This document shows, piece after piece, positions 2,508-47,300 of a DNA stretch of 64,000 nucleotides. The notes beneath the pieces were generated by a model. The model was given only the letters and a program-made list of their open reading frames with translations, was not told where the DNA came from and did no database searches. The translations under genes and the position numbers were made by a program. Each line of letters starts with the position of its first letter. The first letter of the stretch is position 1. The stretch comes from Trichoplax adhaerens (Eukaryota; Animalia; Placozoa): NCBI RefSeq assembly GCF_000150275.1, contig NW_002060969.1, positions 1 through 64,000 on the forward strand, in the 5' to 3' direction.

Positions 2508-5500
2508 ATGGCCAAAGAAGTGATTGCCAAGCAGTTAGCAATATCATCTCCAATAACCGCCATTCATTTCTTGCAATCATCTCATTTACTGGCCGGTACA
2601 TTATTATATATACAGTATATGCAAAATGATAACATGCACTATGTTTCATACGTACACTCTGTAACATACTCATGGATAATTTGTTATGTAAAGTAAAAAC
2701 TTCTAATATTTTAACTGCAAATAGGAGATACAGTTCGTACTTATCCTATGTGCTGTGTGCTTGCATCATTTATAATAACACAAGCACATTTTAAGTGGAT
2801 ATGTGTGTTTTACATGCAGTTGTCGCATCAAGCTTTAAATTTAGGTATACACGTACGTATATGCAAGATATTTTAATCTTAATCGTTATAAATTTGCGCA
2901 ATTTAATTTAGGTGAAGGAGAATACTTACATCTTTTCGATGTTTTAACTGGTTGTAAGCAGAACACATCAAAAGTATTGCATGGTTGTAATATCCATGGA
3001 ATACGATCAGGTTAACCATACGCGTATACATGATAGCATAGAATCGGTGTAATTAGCAAACACTAAAAAGTAAAATAATAAATGGCTAAGAATCGATACT
3101 GTGCTGTTGTGGATTTGTCGCTTACATTACTATAACTCTATGATTTCCTGCTGGCATAAATCGATCCATTACGTCTTGTCAGAGTACTATTTTAAAATAT
3201 TTTCATTAATGTAATACCGTTTACTGCAATGAAGACGTACAAAGTATGAAAATGCGATCTTTGAGTTAATTACATCTTTTCACGTTAAAATAATTAAAGT
3301 AATCCGATGTTGACATACAGTTTCGGATAAGTACAGTACAATAGGTACGGTACGTCCGTAGAGCTCACTATTAGGCAATACTGCAGCTCGGCAGATTAGT
3401 TTAAAAAGATGTAATATTGTAGTTGTCGGCGAACTCCAATGATGATTGCTTGGGCATGGGTAAGAAATGTTTTGACGACTATTTTGTATATTTAAAATCA
3501 GCTTTTTCTAATAACGATTATGTCGTGGCAATATTTGGTGAAAAATGCCTCCGAATCATCAACGTTATTGGAAGTAGTGATCGTTATTTGTTTGAGTAAG
3601 TTCAAGTATCTATCCTGTGTGGCTACTAAACTATACCGCTTATTTATCTTATCCTGTATATTGAAATATGTGTAAAATGTGTGAATACCGAATTACCCTT
3701 AGCATGTAGATATCGCCCTTCATCTTATACGGCGTAAAATGTAAATGTATGTCAGTAGACGAGTGCATGTGATTATACTTTTCCATTATTATTATTTTGA
3801 CACTTAATATTCAAGCGGCTATCAACTTCCAGTAAATAAGGACGTTGCCAATTGCATGATTACACCAATCACTAGTAATTCCTCACTACTCTGAAAAGCG
3901 TTTACGCTGTTTTTTTTGCATTTTTACTTTCTAGCCATCTAAAGGTCTTTAGTCAGTCAATAATGTTTCGGTATGTACTATACCTTTACCGTATTAACAT
4001 CGCAACGATAATTCCATCATGATTAAGCGTTTCCTTCGCCCAAATTTGTATCCTCAATTGTAATTTACCCTAATTCCGTAGTTAGAAACGATCATGACTG
4101 TAACTTATTTGTATGACCCAGAATGGACACTTTGACCTCGGTATTCAATGTGAAATCTTGGATATGGGATGCTGCATGGATTTATGATAACAATAAAGAC
4201 ATCAGAACGAAGGTATGACAACAAGAATAATAATTATCTGCTCCTATGCAATGCAATTTTGCTAGTAATCATAATTCCAAATTGTAAATCGTGATTGAAA
4301 ATTATCGCTGAATTAAATTTGAGATAACTTCATGTGCTACCTTATACGCTACTTTCAGGAGCCTATCCTCCTAGCTCTTGTGACTGGGTTAAATGCCGTT
4401 GTTATAGTAGAATGGAAAACCCTAAATGTACGTTACGTCGTGCAATGCAACCAGCAGTGTATGTTGTATCAGACTTTGGTGATTTATTACTTTATGAAAT
4501 AGTACAAAGTTTCCACCACAGTTATTACTAAATTATCTTCCTTAATCGATCATGTAAATAAAGATATTCTGCCAGCTTCGTCAAACATAACTGTACTTTG
4601 CTCGAGCTAGCGCTGGGAAGTGGTACAGTTTATAATCAGATTTTATTATGGCGAGCCTTTTCTTCCAAGGAATCATTACAAGAAAAGAAACAAGTAGCAG
4701 AAGTTTCCATAAAGCTGATAGGACATGAGGTAATATTCTACTGCAGCTGTAATAAACCTTTAATCAATTACTTAATATATCCATATAAGAGTATGAATTA
4801 TGTCACCATTTTAAGCACACTATATGAGCAGTGTAATTTCCAAATTAATTCACTTGTAGGGTGCTATTTTCTCAATTACTTTCGCTAATGAAAATTATCT
4901 CTGCTCTGCGTCCGATGATCGAAGTATACGATTGTGGCAAGTAAATGAAGATTGGATTTCAGATCCCAGAAAAGAAAGAAAGCCAGTAATATTATCTCCG
5001 TTAAAGACCTTCTATGGTCATAAGGCACGAGTTTGGGATGCGTACCTACTGTCTGATTATGTCATAAGTATTGGAGAGGTATTCAGAAATTTCTGATCCG
5101 TATAGATCACGACGAATTTTAAATTTGTCTCCTCTTGTTTTCATACAATTTGAATCTTCATGTCAGGATGCCTCTTGTATACTTTGGGACCTGGAAGGCA
5201 ACATGATCTATTCGTTTAATGGACATATAGTACGTTTATTTGAGTATTACAATCTTTGATTTAGATATATAAACGTAGAGTCTTACAAAATATTATTTAC
5301 GTCCTTATCAATTCAGGGAAAAAATATTTGGAGTATGGCAATTTCTCCTGATGGATCTCTTGCGGTAGATACAATTGATCTTTTAAGAATCGATGAGATT
5401 TCTGATGCTCTTATTTTTTATCTAATGGCATGACAGGCTACTGGTGGTGGAGATGCATCAATACGTCTCTGGCCTATTCTTAATTTTCATCCGCTTGGTA

Positions 5501-35300: not shown

Positions 35301-37163
35301 ATACTGGATATACTATAAGAAATAAGATTTATGTAAAGCCTATCCTTGCGTTACAGACCCTATAAATGTTACTGTCATATCATGCCTAGAATGATGAAAT
35401 AGGAGAGCTCAAAGTACGAATTAATATGTTGGAGAAACGTGTTGAAAATGCGACAAAAGAGGTGCCCTGAAGAGTGATGAATGCCATTTTTTAAGGCTTG
35501 CTATTAATTGCTATTTTCCGATATTTGTGCAGTCGCAAGCCCACCTTCAGGATTTAGAAAGGAAACTAGAACACACGAAAGAAGAATTGGCTAAGAAGGA
35601 GAGGTTATCAATTATTCAATCGTTGCTTCAGTCTATAATTAACTTAAATTAAAATACTATGAAACTGAATTAGTGTGTTTGAAGCTGCGATGGATGGACT
35701 ACAACAAGACATTGAAGATTTAGAGAGAGAAAAAGAAGAATTAGAGAAAAGGCTGAATACTGTCGCTAAAAAATCGATGATGACTAATATTTCTCAACGT
35801 GGTCCGCCATCTGGAATAGCTGCTATTGTTGCTGGATTAAGCGGATCATCAGGCACTGATCTTAATACTGATAGTAACACTATTACACCTGGATCTATAA
35901 TTGCTGGTGAAACGTCTCAAGTTGTTATCCGAGATTCTGACAGTATTTTGAAACAGGTTCTTAAAATAGCTATGCTTAAAAATTGTACGTGCTTGAACTA
36001 AATCAACTTCATGGAGTCAATATTTTAAAGAATGATACAAAAAATCTTATGCTAGGTGGATATTTTAAAGTCAACGGTTCGCTATCTTAGAAATGAAAAC
36101 CTTCGATTAAAGGGAGAGAAAGCTAAGGTTCTCTATATATGTATTATTATTATTTAAATTCGCTCATAGTGATCTGGCTATTACAGTACTTTTAAACCTG
36201 TATATAACGTTTAAAACAAATTGATTGCATCTGGCTTTGTTAGATTGAATTAGCAAGCCTTCCACCAATAATATTGCCGAATAGTTTAAGTAAGCCTTAC
36301 GATGAATTAGAAGCAGAAAAAGAAGCTGATGGAAACACGGAAACTATAGACGGTAAGGCAACAGATGTTTATAATTTTATTATCTACCTCTAATATAATC
36401 AACTGACGTGTTTTACTAGATGAGCAAGAAAAAGAAACGAAAATTGATGTGAACAAAGAAAATTCTACAGATACAACATTTCAGATTGCCTCCTCGAGAG
36501 CACCCATGCAAATTAAGTCAAGGTCTACCACTAAAACTACTGAATACTCTGTACAATCAGTTGTGCGAGAAATATGTGATGTCCTTCATGTTAGTACTGT
36601 ATTCGTAATATTAAAATTTTTTATTAAGAATTTTCACAACATATATTTTGATTTAAAATTCTTCATCTGTAAAATCTAACCACAGAGAATTGAGTCCGCT
36701 AGTTCAAATCCGATAGTGGTTGATATTAGCAACAGAAAGCCTGGAAATGTACCAGCCTCAGAAAAACAAAAACCTAGTCACCAGCTGGTAAACAGGGTTG
36801 CTTCTCTAAATGAACTGCAATCCTCGTATGACCAACTTCAAAAAAAAGTATCAACATTTGTTGCTAATCGACTTCCTGGTGGTGTATCAAAGACTACATT
36901 TTCTTCATTTGTTACCCCTGTTTTCTCAAAGGTATTTAAATCATACATAAATTTCTTATCTTTACTTTATAATTAAGTCTTTAATACGATAGCATCTTTA
37001 CTCACTGTATTAATCATCCTAGTCATTCTATGAACAAGCTGCTACTCCTGTTATTGGAAAAGTAACGATACCAACTTTGGAGAACGAGTATAAAATGGAC
37101 AGACATAACTTATTGTTACAGCATTCTCAATGGCATGCTCTGCATACATTATTTGTTCGATAG
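29314..37163 (+). CDS. DCTN1: Dynactin subunit 1 (p150Glued), multi-exon
   Basis: N-terminal CAP-Gly domain ([25 protein letters not shown]), Ser/Pro/basic linker, coiled coils ([42 protein letters not shown]), C-terminal FSSFVTPVF ..LHTLFVR* with TAG at 37161-37163. Confidence 0.95.
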
Positions 37164-39731: not shown

Positions 39732-40542
39732 TTATCCCAAAATGCACATTAGCCAAAAACTACCAAATCTACCGCATTTGGATTTATTCTTTTTTGGAGG
39801 CGCTGTTGTTTGATCTTTTTCATTAACATTTCTCGAGGTCCCTTTTTTTGTTAATGAAAGTATCTTGTTTAGCAAGGAGGATCTTCGTTGTGAATCATCT
39901 ATTTATTATAATCATGTAATCTTATATATTAATAGAACTGGAAACACATGATACAATTAAATCATAACCACAGAAATTGAAATAACGGTTGTTCTAGAAC
40001 TATGTACACATCCTACTATTATATAGTATGACATATTCACTATTACTATTCAGCTATTTGAAATAATGTAAAATATAGTACGTGTAGCGTATTTACCTGA
40101 TTTAAGTATATTCGATATGAATTATTAATTTAGTGTTTTTCATTACAGTATAATAAAATATGTCAACGATGGAGTACTTATATATTTATATTCCATCATT
40201 GGAATGAGACTTATTTTCAAGTTAATGTAAAAATTGTTCCAAATGTGAAAAATATTTATAGTAGAAAATGCTCTGAAGGTCTCAATGGTTTTAGTATAAC
40301 TTGATATTAGCGCTATTACCTTTAGGGTGCAGAATTTGACGATTGTAGGGAACATGTCGTATCGATTCCTCCCATCCCTTCGTCAATAGTCTGCTATTTC
40401 CTATGTAATCGTTGAATCGTTTTGGAATTTCGACAAAGCGCTTGTGTTCTACAGATGTAAAGCGACGCGGCGTTGCGTTCGTTAGCTGATAGAACCACAT
40501 GGCACTTATAATCACTACGATAAATTTTTTCATCTTCAGCAT
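39732..40542 (-). CDS. Putative secreted peptide (neuropeptide/hormone-like) precursor, 2 exons (40542-40320, 39898-39732), 129 aa
   Basis: Signal-peptide-like N-terminus MKKFIVVIISAMWFYQLTNA; RR/KR/KR/RR/KK/KK sites; phase-1 GT-AG intron (AAAG|gtaata ... aaatag|AT) joining two open frames; C-terminus KKNKSKCGRFGSFWLMCILG*. Confidence 0.72.
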
Positions 40543-40577
40543 TTTCGAATAAATCTGTTTAAATTGGAAAATCGCAA

Positions 40578-40585
40578 TTTATATA
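40578..40585 (-). promoter_or_regulatory. TATA box of the putative peptide-precursor gene
   Basis: TATATAAA on the minus strand, ending 36 nt upstream of the ATG at 40542. The AT-rich background lowers specificity. Confidence 0.45.
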
Positions 40586-43500
40586 GATATTTATCGAGGC
40601 TTTCTTATTTATAGATAAAATCTTAAATTCTATGTTTGTCTACGGTATCGCATTTATCAATGCACAGCAACTTTGAAGCCTAAATTCAAACAAGTACCTT
40701 TGTGCTTTCATAAAAAAATAGACAAGCGAATAATGCGCTACTGTTATAAAACTAATTGCTATATTTTGAAATAAGCAAGTTCTTTATAAATTTTTAGTGA
40801 TAATCTATACTATTCTTTCAAATATTTTATATAATTCCACTTACATTTATGTAAAGTAATCGGCCCGGTGATAAGATCAGTTCAAGGTGTAGAATGATTA
40901 ATCGATTTGTATCAAAACATTTGCTTTTATAGCTTCTGCACTATTGATTATCTATGATTACACTCGGAATTACGTAATATTATACGTAGTACTTACGAAT
41001 ACTAATGCTATAATATCACTGACAAGAACTAATAAATTACTAGACTATTCGACTACAATAATACGTGTAAACTACGAACAAAGGGTAACAACTGGCTACT
41101 TTTGTTAATAATCCTGAAGGTGCGGATTAAAGTAAACAATGACAGGGAAAGAGGAAGTCGCTGCATAATAGAAGATTATTAAGAAGACTAATTTTTTAAT
41201 CTATAAATGCCAAGGCTTTATAACTTTGTCTATACAAATAAACATAATTCTATTCTTGACGAGTCGTCCCTAACGGTGTTTTAGTTTTAGATTTGTTTTG
41301 TTTGAAGGTGTAAATGTCTGCTGAGGTTATCATACATCTGGAAGCTAAAAATATGTCAGAGTAATCCAAAACATATTTATGCGTAATCAACATACATATG
41401 ATAGAAATGAATGTGAATGTATTGTAAGTCACTGGACACACCGCTGATTCACATCGATCTAATTCACCTTTTATCTATCCCTTCTTATTGCAGCTAACAT
41501 ATAATATCCGCAATATAATTAAATACTACATTTCTTTTTAAAAATGTTAAAATATTAGAATTTATGATTATAAAATATTACTATCATTTATATATAGATA
41601 ATGTATATACGTAAACAATATTGCACCTGTAATCTAACTTTTTTCGAAGTCAAATCATTAAAATCAAGCTGTTATATGGTTCCGATCTATTTAAGAATTG
41701 ATTGTAGAAGTGGATCGAAATACTTATGCAAATATTAAAATGCCCAAATGGCAACGTCATTCCCCAAAATAGAGTGATTGCATATTATACATTTTTTATT
41801 ATCTACGGTATTGTTTAGATTACAATTAAATTTTAGAATCCGAAATATACTGCGTATAAAGAAGCAATCTCACAATTGATTCATAAAAATTTATTAGAAA
41901 GACATTGCCAGCCGTATAGATTAACCTTTGTAGACAAAGTTCTAGCGAAACATATTATTTCAAGATTTAGTATAAATCAAATCTAGCGCCATATTTCGTG
42001 GTTGTTATTTTGTTGTAGCAAATATACTTTGGCAATATATGTTTAATGCCATCAGTATGCAAAATTAAAGATAAATTCTATGGCGTTATAGAATTTTTAT
42101 CTTTATTTAGCATCTTAACCAAATCTTTAAAGGAAATTTCATAATAGAGATAATACTTAAATTTACACCAAGATGCTAAAATATTTAAATTGATATGGCT
42201 ACTGCAAGCATAAGTTTCGATGTTTTGCAGTCTGTATGCTAGTTTAAAGATTAAAAATTGAAGGATCAGGAATCGAAGATATGCTCTACTAAAATCAAAC
42301 TCTAATGAATATAATTTAATTTATTACTTAGATCTGCCGTTATATATAATGGCATAGCCTTAGAAAATCTCAACCAATGTAGGCTACTCTGGATTAAATA
42401 ATAAGGTCCTCGTTGATATGAATTATAGACACATATCGCAATCCTTAAATTTCTTTATCATGGAAATATGTGAACTGTCAAGTCAATGAAACCTTATAGT
42501 CTAATCATGAGTAAATTTTACCTGTGAGGATTTAAGTGATATGTTTTACTACTTGAATTTATCATTATATTGACAGTAGACCCTTACCGTTGTACCTACA
42601 ATACAGTGAGAATCGACCTTTGACAGAAAATTTACGCTTTTAAGAGAAAATTTTTAGTTGAGTGGTCTCTGGTACTGTACAATTAATTACTGTAATTTCT
42701 TAACTGGTCGACTTGATACATGTTTCTCACATGGTCAATTTTAAGTTTTTTGTTCCAGGGTTGGAAGTTCAAGCAATTTGTTAATTTATACTGCTAACGG
42801 AGAGACAAGAAATATATTTTAAAAAAGGCTTTGCTATAATACGTATCGCGTATATCTATTAATAATGATCAAGAATAAATTTTTTTCAAAATATAAATCG
42901 CTGTCCGCAGGTACCGGTAATGAATCAACTGAATAGATTTATTAGTAGACTTTTTAGAAAAGTATACAGTGTCTGTTCATCGTGAATAGGTATTTCAGCT
43001 AGTTTATAAACATGTTATTGTACCAATATTCTGTCGCTTTATGTGAAGTGAGATTGCTTGGATTAGGTGTAAATTTGATATTAATTGTAAATTTTTGTTC
43101 GTGTCCGAACAAGGTCTGTCATTTTCATATATCACAATTCTACTAGAAAACTTCTACAAGATTATGGCCTGGGTTTTCATTGGCTTTACAACAATAGTTC
43201 ATCGATAGAAAATGACGATAGATTTACTGTATACCCAATAAAGTAATGGAGGTGTACCTGCGAATTCTGCTTACCGCAGTTACCGGTAATTTTAGTGCTG
43301 TGCTCATATTGTTTTATGGTAAACAGCAATACACTTAGGAAATTGCTAATAGTGAGATATTTTTAAACCTTTTGTTAATACAAATTAAAATTAGTTGAGG
43401 ATATTCGATGTAAATGCTATAAATAGTGTTACTCACAATTGAGTGAAACCTATCATAATCGTTTTAATAGCGGTTTTGTATAATAACTAAATCAGCCTTT

Positions 43501-44309
43501 CCTTAAGGATTTTAGTGTATGCCTGTTAAAATTTTTAAATATTGGTTAAGGTAAGGCTTGCAGCATCTGATAGAATAATATTAACAGACAGACTTATGAA
43601 TGAAAAAGTACAAAAATAATAATTTCAAATGGATTAATCCGCTTAATCAGAGTATGACACCTGTCATTTTATAATGCCACATGATATCTTTATTTCGTGT
43701 TTCTCAGATAAAGATTTGTAGATGAATTCGTACGTCTAGTCGTCTACTACCGCAGTACAATACCTAATTGCACACTTTGCACTAGCTTCGACTATTTGCG
43801 AGGTTGCTATAGCTATAACGATCGAAACTGGATTGAAATTAAATCTATTAAATCAATTGAAGGTAACAAGCGTTAACCCAGTTTCAAAAAGAAATTTAAG
43901 GTAAAATTTACCGTAATCAAATAGAATCCATAGCGATGGAGGAATAGATAAATATTTATACCCTGGCAACACGGCGAGTAATGTTAGAAAAGATTCTTAC
44001 TTATACAGTACTATGAATTTGCGATATAACGCTATGTAAGTGTTTACTATAGGTTAAAAGATAAGGTGAATCTTCAATTCAGCACGTATATTATTATCAC
44101 TGCAATATACAGTGTTTAAAAGAATTCTAGAGCATAATTTTAAAAAGAGCACGCTATAGTGTCAAGTAATTGTCTTGCATTTTTCCGCAATGTCGTCATA
44201 TCTCCGTTGATGATATACGCCTTTGAATCTTATTAATTGAATATGATTGTACACTTCCGTTCACCATTCGATCTTGCCAAATTCTGATTCATTGACTTTC
44301 ACTAGGAGC

Positions 44310-47300
44310 TTAATTGGCATCACAAATAACTTCTACAATCTATAAATATATTTATGAATTTTAACAAACTATAATTAGGTAGCACAACGGTAAATTTTTG
44401 CTTACGCTTTGTTCCATAAGTAAAGGTTCCAGGCATCGATTTACAGTACTATTCACAACCTCATCCAATAGAAAACTCACTATACTGTTATTAAAATAAT
44501 GTTAAATATTACTTTAGTAACGACTAACATAAAATCATTTATAAAAGAGTATATGAACATCGCACAAGAGTGAACGATCGACTACCTTTCGTCAGAAACG
44601 AATTTCCATAAGTGCAGGTATAAGTAGTATGTGTCGACTTGTATTTGTTGCAGACCATATTTATTAAAAGTGCGCAGTCGGATACACTCAAGAAACGTCT
44701 TGAAGATAAAAGTGCCTCAGTTATAAATACAGTTTACAGTTATTCTAGCATACTGCTAAAGATACATACTTTTAAAGCAATTTTAACTATTCCCGTCATA
44801 ACAGATAATTTACTGAATTCTACGGCACTAAAGATTTCAATCCTTTCTGTAAATAGCTTCTGGATATTAGACATTAAGCTAGTATCAAACGGTGCCACAC
44901 TAACGAAATAAATAATCAAGATGTTAATCGGATGCATTCTGCTTCCTGTATGACACAGAATCGAATTTTAATTCGCTAACTTTCCACTGTATCCCCATTG
45001 TTTAGATTGATTTCTTGAAGGTGGACGCCTCCCTGAATCTTTTCCATAGTAACAAAATATTTACCATATAATTTCGTCAAGATATTCATGAATTAGCTTA
45101 ATTATAATAATAATTATATCCTTTTAAACAGTATAGTGATAACATCGTTTCACCTGAGCCGATATCGTGTCTTGATGCATCTTCAAATAACATTCCAACC
45201 TGCACATCAACAGCGTTGAGATCTTCTACAACTCTTTTCATAACAGAACGGGCATTCCTTGGCTCAATGGTGTTCATCCAGTCGCGCGTTTCAACGCTTT
45301 TTCTTATCATCTAAAATGTAAATCGAAATATAAATGTATACCTACTGCCTAGAATTATGCAACATATAGCCTAGTTGGTGACAGGGACTACTCAAGAAGA
45401 AATTTTGTTAATTTTTCTCTCCTCCCCTTCTTGTAAGGAGAAGGTGGAAGGCTTAGTTTGGCTGGAGGGGATTAGCTTGAGATTTGGGGGACAAATTTTT
45501 TCTTCAGTAGTCCCTGTTGGTGGTCAGTAATCTTATCTACATCAAAATAAACTAGTAATTTATGGTGTGATGTGGGTACCTGAGATATTATTAGCCCTTG
45601 AGTTTTTACGTAGTAATCCAGTAGAGTCTAAAATATTTGAGGTACTTTAATACTAAGATAACGTGAATTGTGATTATAATATTACTATATAACCTGAGCA
45701 GTATCTTTGGTTTGTTGACGTAATTCCATAACTGATAGACTGTTTGAGCTACTATCACCGCCAATAATGTGGGGAAATTTCTCATCTGTTATAGATATCT
45801 GTAAAATTCGCAACAGTAAAATGCTGTAGCAATTAGAGGTACTTCAAGTATTGTAAAAGCTCAATTTGATAAAAAAAATGAAAGGTGCGTGCTTACTATA
45901 TAATTAATAGTCGAATTGTGAAAATCAGAGCAGAGGCGGGAAAGTAGTAGCAATAATTCCGGTGGTATTGACATTCCTTTACCGTGAATGGTCGTGCAAA
46001 AATTCTAAAACGATTAAATCAAAATCTTGACTGCTCCATCGGCGCATTTAAATTATGTAATAAAATTACGAGTAGATAACTTTGATATTCCTAACTTTCG
46101 CTACTATGTTGACATGCTTGATAAAATTGATAACGAATGAATCCCTGACATCGCGACAAAAGTTATTTCGAAAGTATGCTGTGTTGGCTATAGTAGTGAA
46201 ATCCGGGTTTATAAATTCCTGCGATAAAGCAATACATTGTAATGTTATGTGCATTAGTGGTCACTCATTAATACAATGTAATACTGTGTGCCAAATATAA
46301 TGATAACATAATATCGACCTCCAAATGATCGAGGAAGTATTTCATTTTTTGGGTGACAGCTGAAATAGTTCTATGTAATAAATCGATCATTTTAATTTCC
46401 AGCTCTTTATCTTTTTGAGATATTTTGTTACTCGCCATAGTCTGCCTAATATCAGTTATGCAATCTAGTAAGTTAAGAATAGGAAAGTGACGTTAAATAT
46501 CACTCATTATATAAGACTAATTTGAATACAATGAAATATTTTAGCGAACCTGCAAAATACGCTTTCAATTGCTTGAGATAGTGATGTAAACGCTCTCGTG
46601 TTGCATCAAATACCACGTTTAAGCTTATCCTGTAATAATTATAATCAGGATAGAGTCAGATACCAAGATATTTTGTGATCGTGCACAGTTTTAATTTATA
46701 TTGTATATGGTATACGTATCTCTCAGAGTGTCAGAATATTTAGAATGGAAGTTATCTTACTCTTTTATGCCAATATCAGGCAGTAGCTTGTCTAAAGCTT
46801 GTAAACGTCTGTAGAATCTGTCAAGGGCTCTAACTAGGATAGGATTGTCTTCACTATCGGTCTGCAATGAGGCAAAGTAGGCATAGATCACCCATTGTTA
46901 AAGGCTAATGCATCATTAAGCTATTACAAAATGTCGAAACGAAAATGATCTAAAGTGTATCTAGATATAAATTACGTACACAAGGAATTTCCAATAGTAT
47001 AAAATCCTGACAATAGCTTAAATAATCGTTAAACATTTTTTGGACAAACTGTCTGAGTCTTTCAGTTGCCGCATTTTCTGTTTCACGTTGAAGTGGTGTT
47101 CTGTTTTTGATAATGATTTATTGTGAGACTGACATCGCTAGGCATTAAGATACTATAAATGTTTAGTATGCACACCCAATATCACTATGATATTGCATGA
47201 AATTCTCTTTATATGTTGCAATTACAAGACACATGTCGCTTATGAATCCATTACAGCCGCAATCAATAAACTCCAAGATATCCTGCATTCGAACAAGACT

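Follow-up and report, generated by a model that had tools for sequence, protein, structure and literature searches.

The stretch of DNA analysed here, referred to as the window, comprises 64,000 nucleotides of Trichoplax adhaerens (contig NW_002060969.1, positions 1 to 64,000) and carries on its reverse strand a small gene with two coding exons. Translation starts at the ATG at 40542 (−), and the coding part of exon 1 (40320..40542, −) consists of 74 codons, the last three of which read HPK (final codon 40323-40321), plus a single G at 40320 that provides the first base of codon 75, giving an intron of phase 1. This intron (39899..40319, −) spans 421 nt and is of the GT..AG type, with its donor GT at 40319-40318, in the context AAAG/GTAATA, and its acceptor AG at 39900-39899. 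The coding part of exon 2 (39732..39898, −) starts at 39898 with the last two bases of codon 75, the split codon being G + AT and encoding Asp, and runs through 54 further codons (76-129) to a TAA stop at 39734-39732. The joined exons are in frame and give a product of 129 residues that ends in CILG and holds two cysteines in all, Cys116 and Cys126. A TATAAA hexamer at 40608..40613 (−), some 70 nt before the ATG, might be a TATA box on the basis of its pattern. The gene stands alone in a long AT-rich spacer: the roughly 4 kb upstream (40543-44600) hold no open reading frame of at least 70 residues on either strand, and coiled-coil-like reading frames lie downstream on the opposite strand (35675-36976, +). 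At the corresponding locus of Trichoplax sp. H2, a dynactin p150-type gene (1326 aa, with CAP_GLY and Dynactin Pfam matches) follows in convergent orientation at a distance of about 2.6 kb. A search of the animal's own genome (a 105.6-Mb assembly in 1414 contigs) finds exon 2 as a single copy and the ring sequence discussed below at its own locus as the sole match, and it reveals no paralogue of either, even at three mismatches.

A protein search with exon 1 gave one match, P0001, the 129-residue "hypothetical protein TrispH2_007822" of Trichoplax sp. H2 (RDD38592.1; also in EukProt). Its residues 1-74 are identical to the product of the window exon 1, it shows the same splice and it differs from the window product at one residue, K93N; the span of the gene, 811 bases, is equal in the two. 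Exon and splice coordinates and the translation, as given by an earlier sequence-only reading, are therefore correct, both on re-reading the window and by comparison with the public H2 protein. The two loci differ at six positions in 1411 nt, three of them in the intron, and the H1-H2 comparison is thus uninformative; so small a distance suits T. adhaerens H1 or a very close relative. The sole coding difference, at nucleotide 39843 (codon 93, 39843-39845; AAA for Lys in the window, AAT for Asn in H2), costs H2 one KK pair of the pro-region. The 90%-identity cluster of P0001 has one member, with no H1 protein record beside it. The gene, which that reading had called hidden, appears to be absent from the public H1 protein set, and this is the only sense in which the word applies, as it is already annotated in Trichoplax sp. 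H2. Neither does it represent the new system that had been suggested: in the accessible part of Table S5 of Najle et al. 2023 (Cell, PMC10580291), the gene is listed among the propeptides of peptidergic cells for which peptides were detected (TrH2_TrispH2_007822, orthogroup OG_910, peptide H2NP041), and the orthogroup is present in all four placozoans considered there, namely T. adhaerens, H2, Hoilungia hongkongensis H13, and Cladtertia H23. The window locus is orthologous to TrispH2_007822 (OG_910). The strings FWLMC and GSFWLMC do not occur in the accessible supplementary text of that study, GRFGSFW does not occur in searchable papers and the locus tag is likewise absent from searchable main texts. 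A literature search found no small cyclic placozoan peptide. What is new here is the conserved ring, as a well-founded prediction of the product, whereas the gene itself is already known.

Searches for relatives were run with the H2 protein P0001 as a whole, and with the window exons separately. HMMER against 1.84 billion representative proteins returned one real relative of P0001, P0002 (80 aa, E 4.5e-7), and no relative outside Placozoa; a second hit, P0003 (1137 aa, repeat-rich, E 1.6e-4), was set aside as low-complexity noise. A word-index search with P0002 led in turn to P0004 (90 aa). Both relatives proved to consist of exon 1 followed by unspliced intron sequence, and they were located, respectively, on two Logan contigs (L003 and L004) and on two ENA metagenome contigs (L005 and L006). 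P0002 matches the H23 peptide pattern and P0004 that of H13, which is no more than suggestive as to the species. Exon 2 alone gave no candidate in a 5.8-billion protein index, and no match to the exon 2 alignment or to a degenerate DNA pattern of the ring was found in JGI metagenomes.

The contigs reproduce the two-exon layout. On L003, exon 1 occupies 2707-2926 (73 codons plus a G, again phase 1) and is followed by a GT at 2927, and exon 2 is open up to a stop codon at 3453-3455, ending in ...SPKKNKSNCGRFGSFWLMCIIG; L004, from a second sample, has an identical exon 2. The acceptor on L003 is a tandem CAGCAG (NAGNAG, 3283-3288), either AG of which keeps the frame, with or without one Ala after ...LHG. 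P0004 carries exactly the sequence QYNVFHSQDRHNG known from Hoilungia mass spectrometry. On its contig, L005, exon 1 ends in ...DRHNG plus a G at 1176, followed by GT (phase 1), and beyond an AG at 1733-1734 the sequence CC TAT GCC GTT CGA supplies the remainder of an Ala codon and YAVR. The Hoilungia peptides that read ...DRHNG-A-YAV thus cross the exon junction of L005, which is proof from protein data of the two-exon splice in the Hoilungia lineage. Neither L005 nor L006 reaches the ring, as both end 12 codons into exon 2.

In AT-rich DNA such as that of the window (34% GC), the open frame across exon 2 is weak evidence when taken alone: 5% of the AG sites in the window precede at least 54 open codons in one fixed frame, and this frequency speaks for the joined frame being a product of chance from which no protein is made. 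We give that explanation virtually no credence, as it is refuted by a public gene model that joins the exons at the same point, by published single-cell expression and peptides, by the junction peptides of Hoilungia, and by the conservation of frame and C-terminus in L003 across a saturated intron. It is this conservation in a distant placozoan, together with the published expression and mass-spectrometry data, that raises the gene model above chance.

The N-terminus has the composition of a signal peptide. Residues 1-23 (40474..40542, −) comprise a basic n-region (MLKMKK), a hydrophobic core, and a c-region ending in TNA, with Thr24 next, and cleavage after residue 23 is predicted by the −3/−1 rule. 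Hydrophobicity (Kyte-Doolittle, nine-residue window) reaches its maximum of 3.07 at residues 7-15 and does not exceed 1.91 outside the signal peptide, and YQLTNA is conserved in L003 and L005. In the rows of Table S5 available to us, the H2 gene is flagged 'signature_wSP_nTM' by SignalP 5/TMHMM, whereas its Hoilungia orthologue, Hhon_g03345.t1, is flagged 'nSP_wTM' (PMC10580291). The N-termini of P0001 and P0004 look alike, and the discrepancy may be an artefact of the gene model or of the predictor. With the caveat of this row, the product shows a cleavable N-terminal signal peptide and no other membrane span, as expected for a neuropeptide precursor. The ESM Atlas model of the precursor (pLDDT 0.57, pTM 0.17) is consistent with a mostly disordered propeptide.

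The expression reported in the literature is that of dedicated peptide-secreting cells. According to the accessible entries of Table S5, the H2 gene peaks in the class peptidergic_lambda, with a maximum fold change of 31.96, and the WPPF precursor is also expressed in lambda cells; WPPF cells correspond to H1 metacell C181, and metacells 181-182 are labelled peptidergic_lambda in the available H1 cell-type sheet (Najle et al. 2023, PMC10580291). These WPPF cells are small and located in the central dorsal epithelium. Peptidergic cells carry a module of processing enzymes, with expression of prohormone convertase, carboxypeptidases, PAM, and glutaminyl cyclase (Najle et al. 2023, PMC10580291). 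Processed peptides have been physically detected for the pro-region, with none from the ring among those listed in the accessible tables of the same study. In H2, mass spectrometry identified pQILHPK (pyro-Glu; Gln69-Lys74, 40321..40338, −) weakly, with 1 PSM and a DeepNovo correlation of 0.32 in Table S5 as available; it was chosen as the representative peptide of the gene, curated as H2NP041, and entered into a docking screen (PMC10580291). The Hoilungia orthologue yielded pQHKSFIKNPE, pQYNVFHSQDR, pQYNVFHSQDRHNGAYAV, pQDRHNGAYAV, and HNGAYAV, with two search engines and several PSMs in the same available data (PMC10580291). The start of the pro-region (40420-40473) carries three basic-basic-Phe units, RRF, KRF, and KRF; L003 has RF, KSF, and ERF at the matching places, and in Hoilungia the peptide pQHKSFIKNPE has its cleavage site immediately ahead of the last Arg-Phe. 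Gene model, signal peptide, conserved two-exon layout, and published peptides all back the original description of the locus as a two-exon secreted prepropeptide.

Comparison of the window with L003 reveals where selection has acted. Amino-acid identity amounts to 47% in exon 1 and 61% in exon 2, and the identity of the intron (0.60) is that of shuffled sequence (0.58). Over the 20 codons from KK110-111 to Gly129 there are nine synonymous-only changes and two replacements (Lys115 to Asn and Leu128 to Ile). Within the ring, CGRFGSFWLMC, all 11 residues are identical in L003/L004, with four synonymous changes and no replacement; the terminal Gly, encoded by GGA in the window, is GGG in L003, a synonymous change; and the alignment shows no variation in DQTT and PKKNKS, the stretches that precede the ring. 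By the Nei-Gojobori method, dN is 0.052 in the tail from KK to Gly (pS 0.89), 0.373 in the pro-region (pS 0.71), and 0.302 in the signal peptide (pS 0.72), that is, the predicted mature peptide is more constrained than the spacers (dN 0.052 vs 0.373), as in neuropeptide precursors. The observed identical run spans 12 residues, a length attained in 1.7% of column shuffles. The ring comparison covers two independent lineages, Trichoplax H1/H2 and L003/L004, and across them strong purifying selection bears on the ring, on the basic residues that precede it, and on the Gly. The expectation, put forward from the sequence alone, that conservation would be concentrated on the Cys ring, its Trp, and the final Gly is borne out by these figures.

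The conserved C-terminal module, Gln104-Gly129 (39735..39812, −), is our candidate for the mature-peptide region and is composed of DQTT, PKKNKS, the ring, and I-(L/I)-G. The ring itself, Cys116-Cys126 (39744..39776, −), is of the Cys-X9-Cys type and would be closed by a disulfide between what are, after removal of the signal peptide, the only cysteines in all three lineages. Gly129 (codon 39735..39737, −) is the putative amide donor according to PAM substrate rules. Two N-termini can be proposed. Cleavage after KK110-111 would leave Asn112-Leu128-amide, of 17 residues (expected monoisotopic mass 1985.979). Paired lysines are, however, often left uncut in placozoan peptides, as in the abundant pQQKKPYNGWPPF (WPPF) and in pQAKKSFHFVEN (PWN), both of which retain an internal KK in the accessible mass-spectrometry data of Najle et al. 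2023, and typical placozoan N-termini are Gln after Asp or Asn; together with the invariant Asp103-Gln104, this suggests an alternative start at pGlu104, giving pGlu104-Leu128-amide, of 25 residues (2820.439). As judged from the sequence, a pGlu start after Asp103 and a cut after KK110-111 are equally likely candidates. Disulfide, amidation, exact N-terminus, and signalling role are all inferred.

The fact that mass spectrometry caught pro-region peptides only, in Hoilungia with two engines and several PSMs as far as the available tables go, and that the authors picked pQILHPK as representative, could mean that the pyroglutamyl peptides of the pro-region are the bioactive products, the C-terminal loop being a structural or sorting (granule-targeting) element. 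Chromogranin B and POMC have granule-targeting loops of this kind at their N-termini. We consider this rather unlikely. The pro-region is poorly conserved (exon 1 47% identical, dN 0.37), and pQILHPK is without a match in the Hoilungia orthologues (counts 0/0 in Table S5 as available). Identity at 11 of 11 residues together with a conserved terminal Gly is not expected for a sorting loop. Moreover, the published search was blind to disulfide peptides: its variable modifications were only amidation, pyro-Glu, and Met oxidation, with a tolerance of 7 ppm, and the available text makes no mention of reduction, alkylation, or disulfides (Najle et al. 2023, PMC10580291). Closing the ring by oxidation shifts the mass of the peptide by 2.016 Da, which rules out a match under such settings, so the non-detection of the ring peptide is uninformative. 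A half-disulfide modification was included for Nematostella by Thiel et al. 2024. Our preferred reading, which we regard as fairly probable, is that of a single-copy two-exon gene for a 129-residue precursor of the neuropeptide type, with the C-terminal ring amide as the selected product.

The composition of the C-terminal peptide brings to mind a further possibility, that of a secreted defence peptide with antimicrobial or anti-predator activity. Its cationic head (NKSK, Arg) and hydrophobic C-terminal disulfide loop resemble 'Rana-box' or bactenecin-type peptides, its net charge is +3, its tail, FWLMCIL, is hydrophobic, and lambda/WPPF cells lie in the dorsal epithelium. Still, the expression peak falls in a peptidergic cell type with a neuropeptide-processing module, and the gene is single-copy and shows no family expansion. 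Rapid change is moreover the usual course for peptides of host defence, yet no residue of this ring differs although synonymous divergence is saturated. All of this makes a defensive role improbable. The last four residues could also be read in another way, since CILG in the window (39735-39746) and CIIG in L003 (3441-3452) formally fit Cys-aliphatic-aliphatic-X, and a CaaX-type lipidation box, or a GPI-type signal, would leave the C-terminus anchored in a membrane. Prenyl transferases, however, are cytosolic and CaaX proteins are cytosolic and lack a signal peptide, whereas the precursor has a signal peptide and gives rise to lumenal pyro-Glu peptides; Gly is besides a poor prenylation residue at position X. 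A GPI signal would call for a much longer hydrophobic tail (the Kyte-Doolittle maximum outside the signal peptide is 1.91), and either form of anchoring leaves the conservation of the first Cys and of the ring interior unexplained. We therefore take membrane anchoring to be extremely improbable; the CaaX fit is probably a coincidence in a secreted protein.

Under the secreted ring amide reading, the following sequence of events can be envisaged. The signal peptide would take the precursor into the secretory pathway of the peptidergic lambda cells, the WPPF-expressing cells of the central dorsal epithelium, where the poorly conserved and largely disordered pro-region would be cut by convertase at single and paired basic residues, leaving pyroglutamyl by-products of the kind seen in Hoilungia and, weakly, in H2. 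Cys116 and Cys126 would close an 11-residue disulfide ring, and PAM would use Gly129 to produce a C-terminal Ile-Leu-amide. The mature form would be either residues 112-128, after a cut behind the KK pair, or pGlu104-128, after a cut behind Asp103, the latter being the usual N-terminal processing of placozoans and cnidarians, and it may be released as a paracrine signal acting on a putative receptor.

The OG_910 entry of Najle et al. 2023 refers to the same gene, a signal-peptide propeptide of lambda cells, for which that study reports pro-region peptides only. In being a secreted precursor of dedicated peptidergic cells, the product resembles those of WPPF, PWN, SIFGamide, RWamide, and FFNPamide (Nikitin 2015; Varoqueaux 2018; Hauser et al. 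2022). These classical placozoan propeptides show pGlu N-termini after Asp or Asn and amidation from a Gly donor, and they are multi-copy, linear, Cys-free, and found by repeat-seeking scripts, which confirmed just twelve multi-copy preprohormones in the work of Hauser et al. 2022. The window precursor, unlike them, carries a single non-repeated Cys-ringed unit at its extreme C-terminus, and the Gly is its last residue, with no basic residues beyond.

In its layout (a signal peptide, a long and weakly conserved pro-region, and one C-terminal disulfide ring) the precursor is similar to those of somatostatin, urotensin II, allatostatin-C, and MCH, and the Phe-Trp inside the ring is as in the somatostatin/urotensin II type. 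The rings of somatostatin, urotensin II, allatostatin-C, and MCH enclose 10, 4, 6, and 8 residues, respectively, that of the window 9. As in somatostatin, urotensin II, and allatostatin-C, the cyclic peptide is C-terminal, with the ring three residues from the stop codon, but the FWK(-Thr) core and the Cys spacings typical of these families are not found, the window having FWL, with Leu in place of the Lys, and Cys-X9-Cys. The candidate would also end in an amidated tail of two residues, a feature mostly absent from somatostatin, urotensin II, allatostatin-C, and MCH. No similarity to somatostatin, urotensin, allatostatin-C, or MCH, nor to any other neuropeptide family of Pfam, was detected by Pfam hmmscan (E up to 10), and none by phmmer against the 1.84 billion representatives, where the matches are placozoan only; FAM91_C, ERG4_ERG24, and STAT1_TAZ2bind appeared in Pfam as sub-threshold noise, and ESM Atlas offered no usable neighbours. 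The caution of the sequence-only reading, which had pointed to the Phe-Trp core and refrained from claiming homology, was right, given these Pfam and HMMER searches without a match. Shared ancestry of the ring peptide with those bilaterian peptides of the somatostatin/allatostatin-C type that have their ring at the C-terminus is a much less likely extension of our reading, which we deem very improbable. As regards the receptors, Thiel et al. 2024 found no stable 1:1 cnidarian orthologues of the SSTR/AstC-R type.

Among amidated ring neuropeptides, the parallel is one of chemistry. Vasopressin/oxytocin, CCAP, and CCHamide are small peptides that combine one intramolecular disulfide with C-terminal amidation, and Koch and Grimmelikhuijzen have reportedly described cubozoan Cys-containing amides. 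Ring sizes, sequences, and precursor positions all differ from those of the window candidate (vasopressin, for instance, comes directly after the signal peptide in its precursor), no sequence similarity to these vasopressin/oxytocin, CCAP, CCHamide, and cubozoan peptides was found, and the likeness is an analogy only.

As the gene has already been annotated and catalogued, the gain from the present analysis is a refined prediction of its product rather than a new system. Taken a step further, the proposal is that the Cys116-Cys126 ring amide is a secreted hormone conserved across Placozoa, the first small disulfide-cyclised signal of the neuropeptide type in the phylum, with a receptor and a behavioural effect of its own, and to this we give even chances. 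If real, the hormone would have been missed because predictors look for repeats and peptidomics is blind to disulfides, and current catalogues would be shown to have a blind spot, due both to repeat-seeking prediction scripts and to peptidomics searches without disulfides. Placozoans coordinate their behaviour by means of secreted peptides and without neurons, and the known repertoire is short, linear, and multi-copy. With a single-copy, ring-closed amide, unchanged between distant placozoan lineages, this repertoire would gain a structural class, and the WPPF/lambda cell type a second and probably more specific signal.
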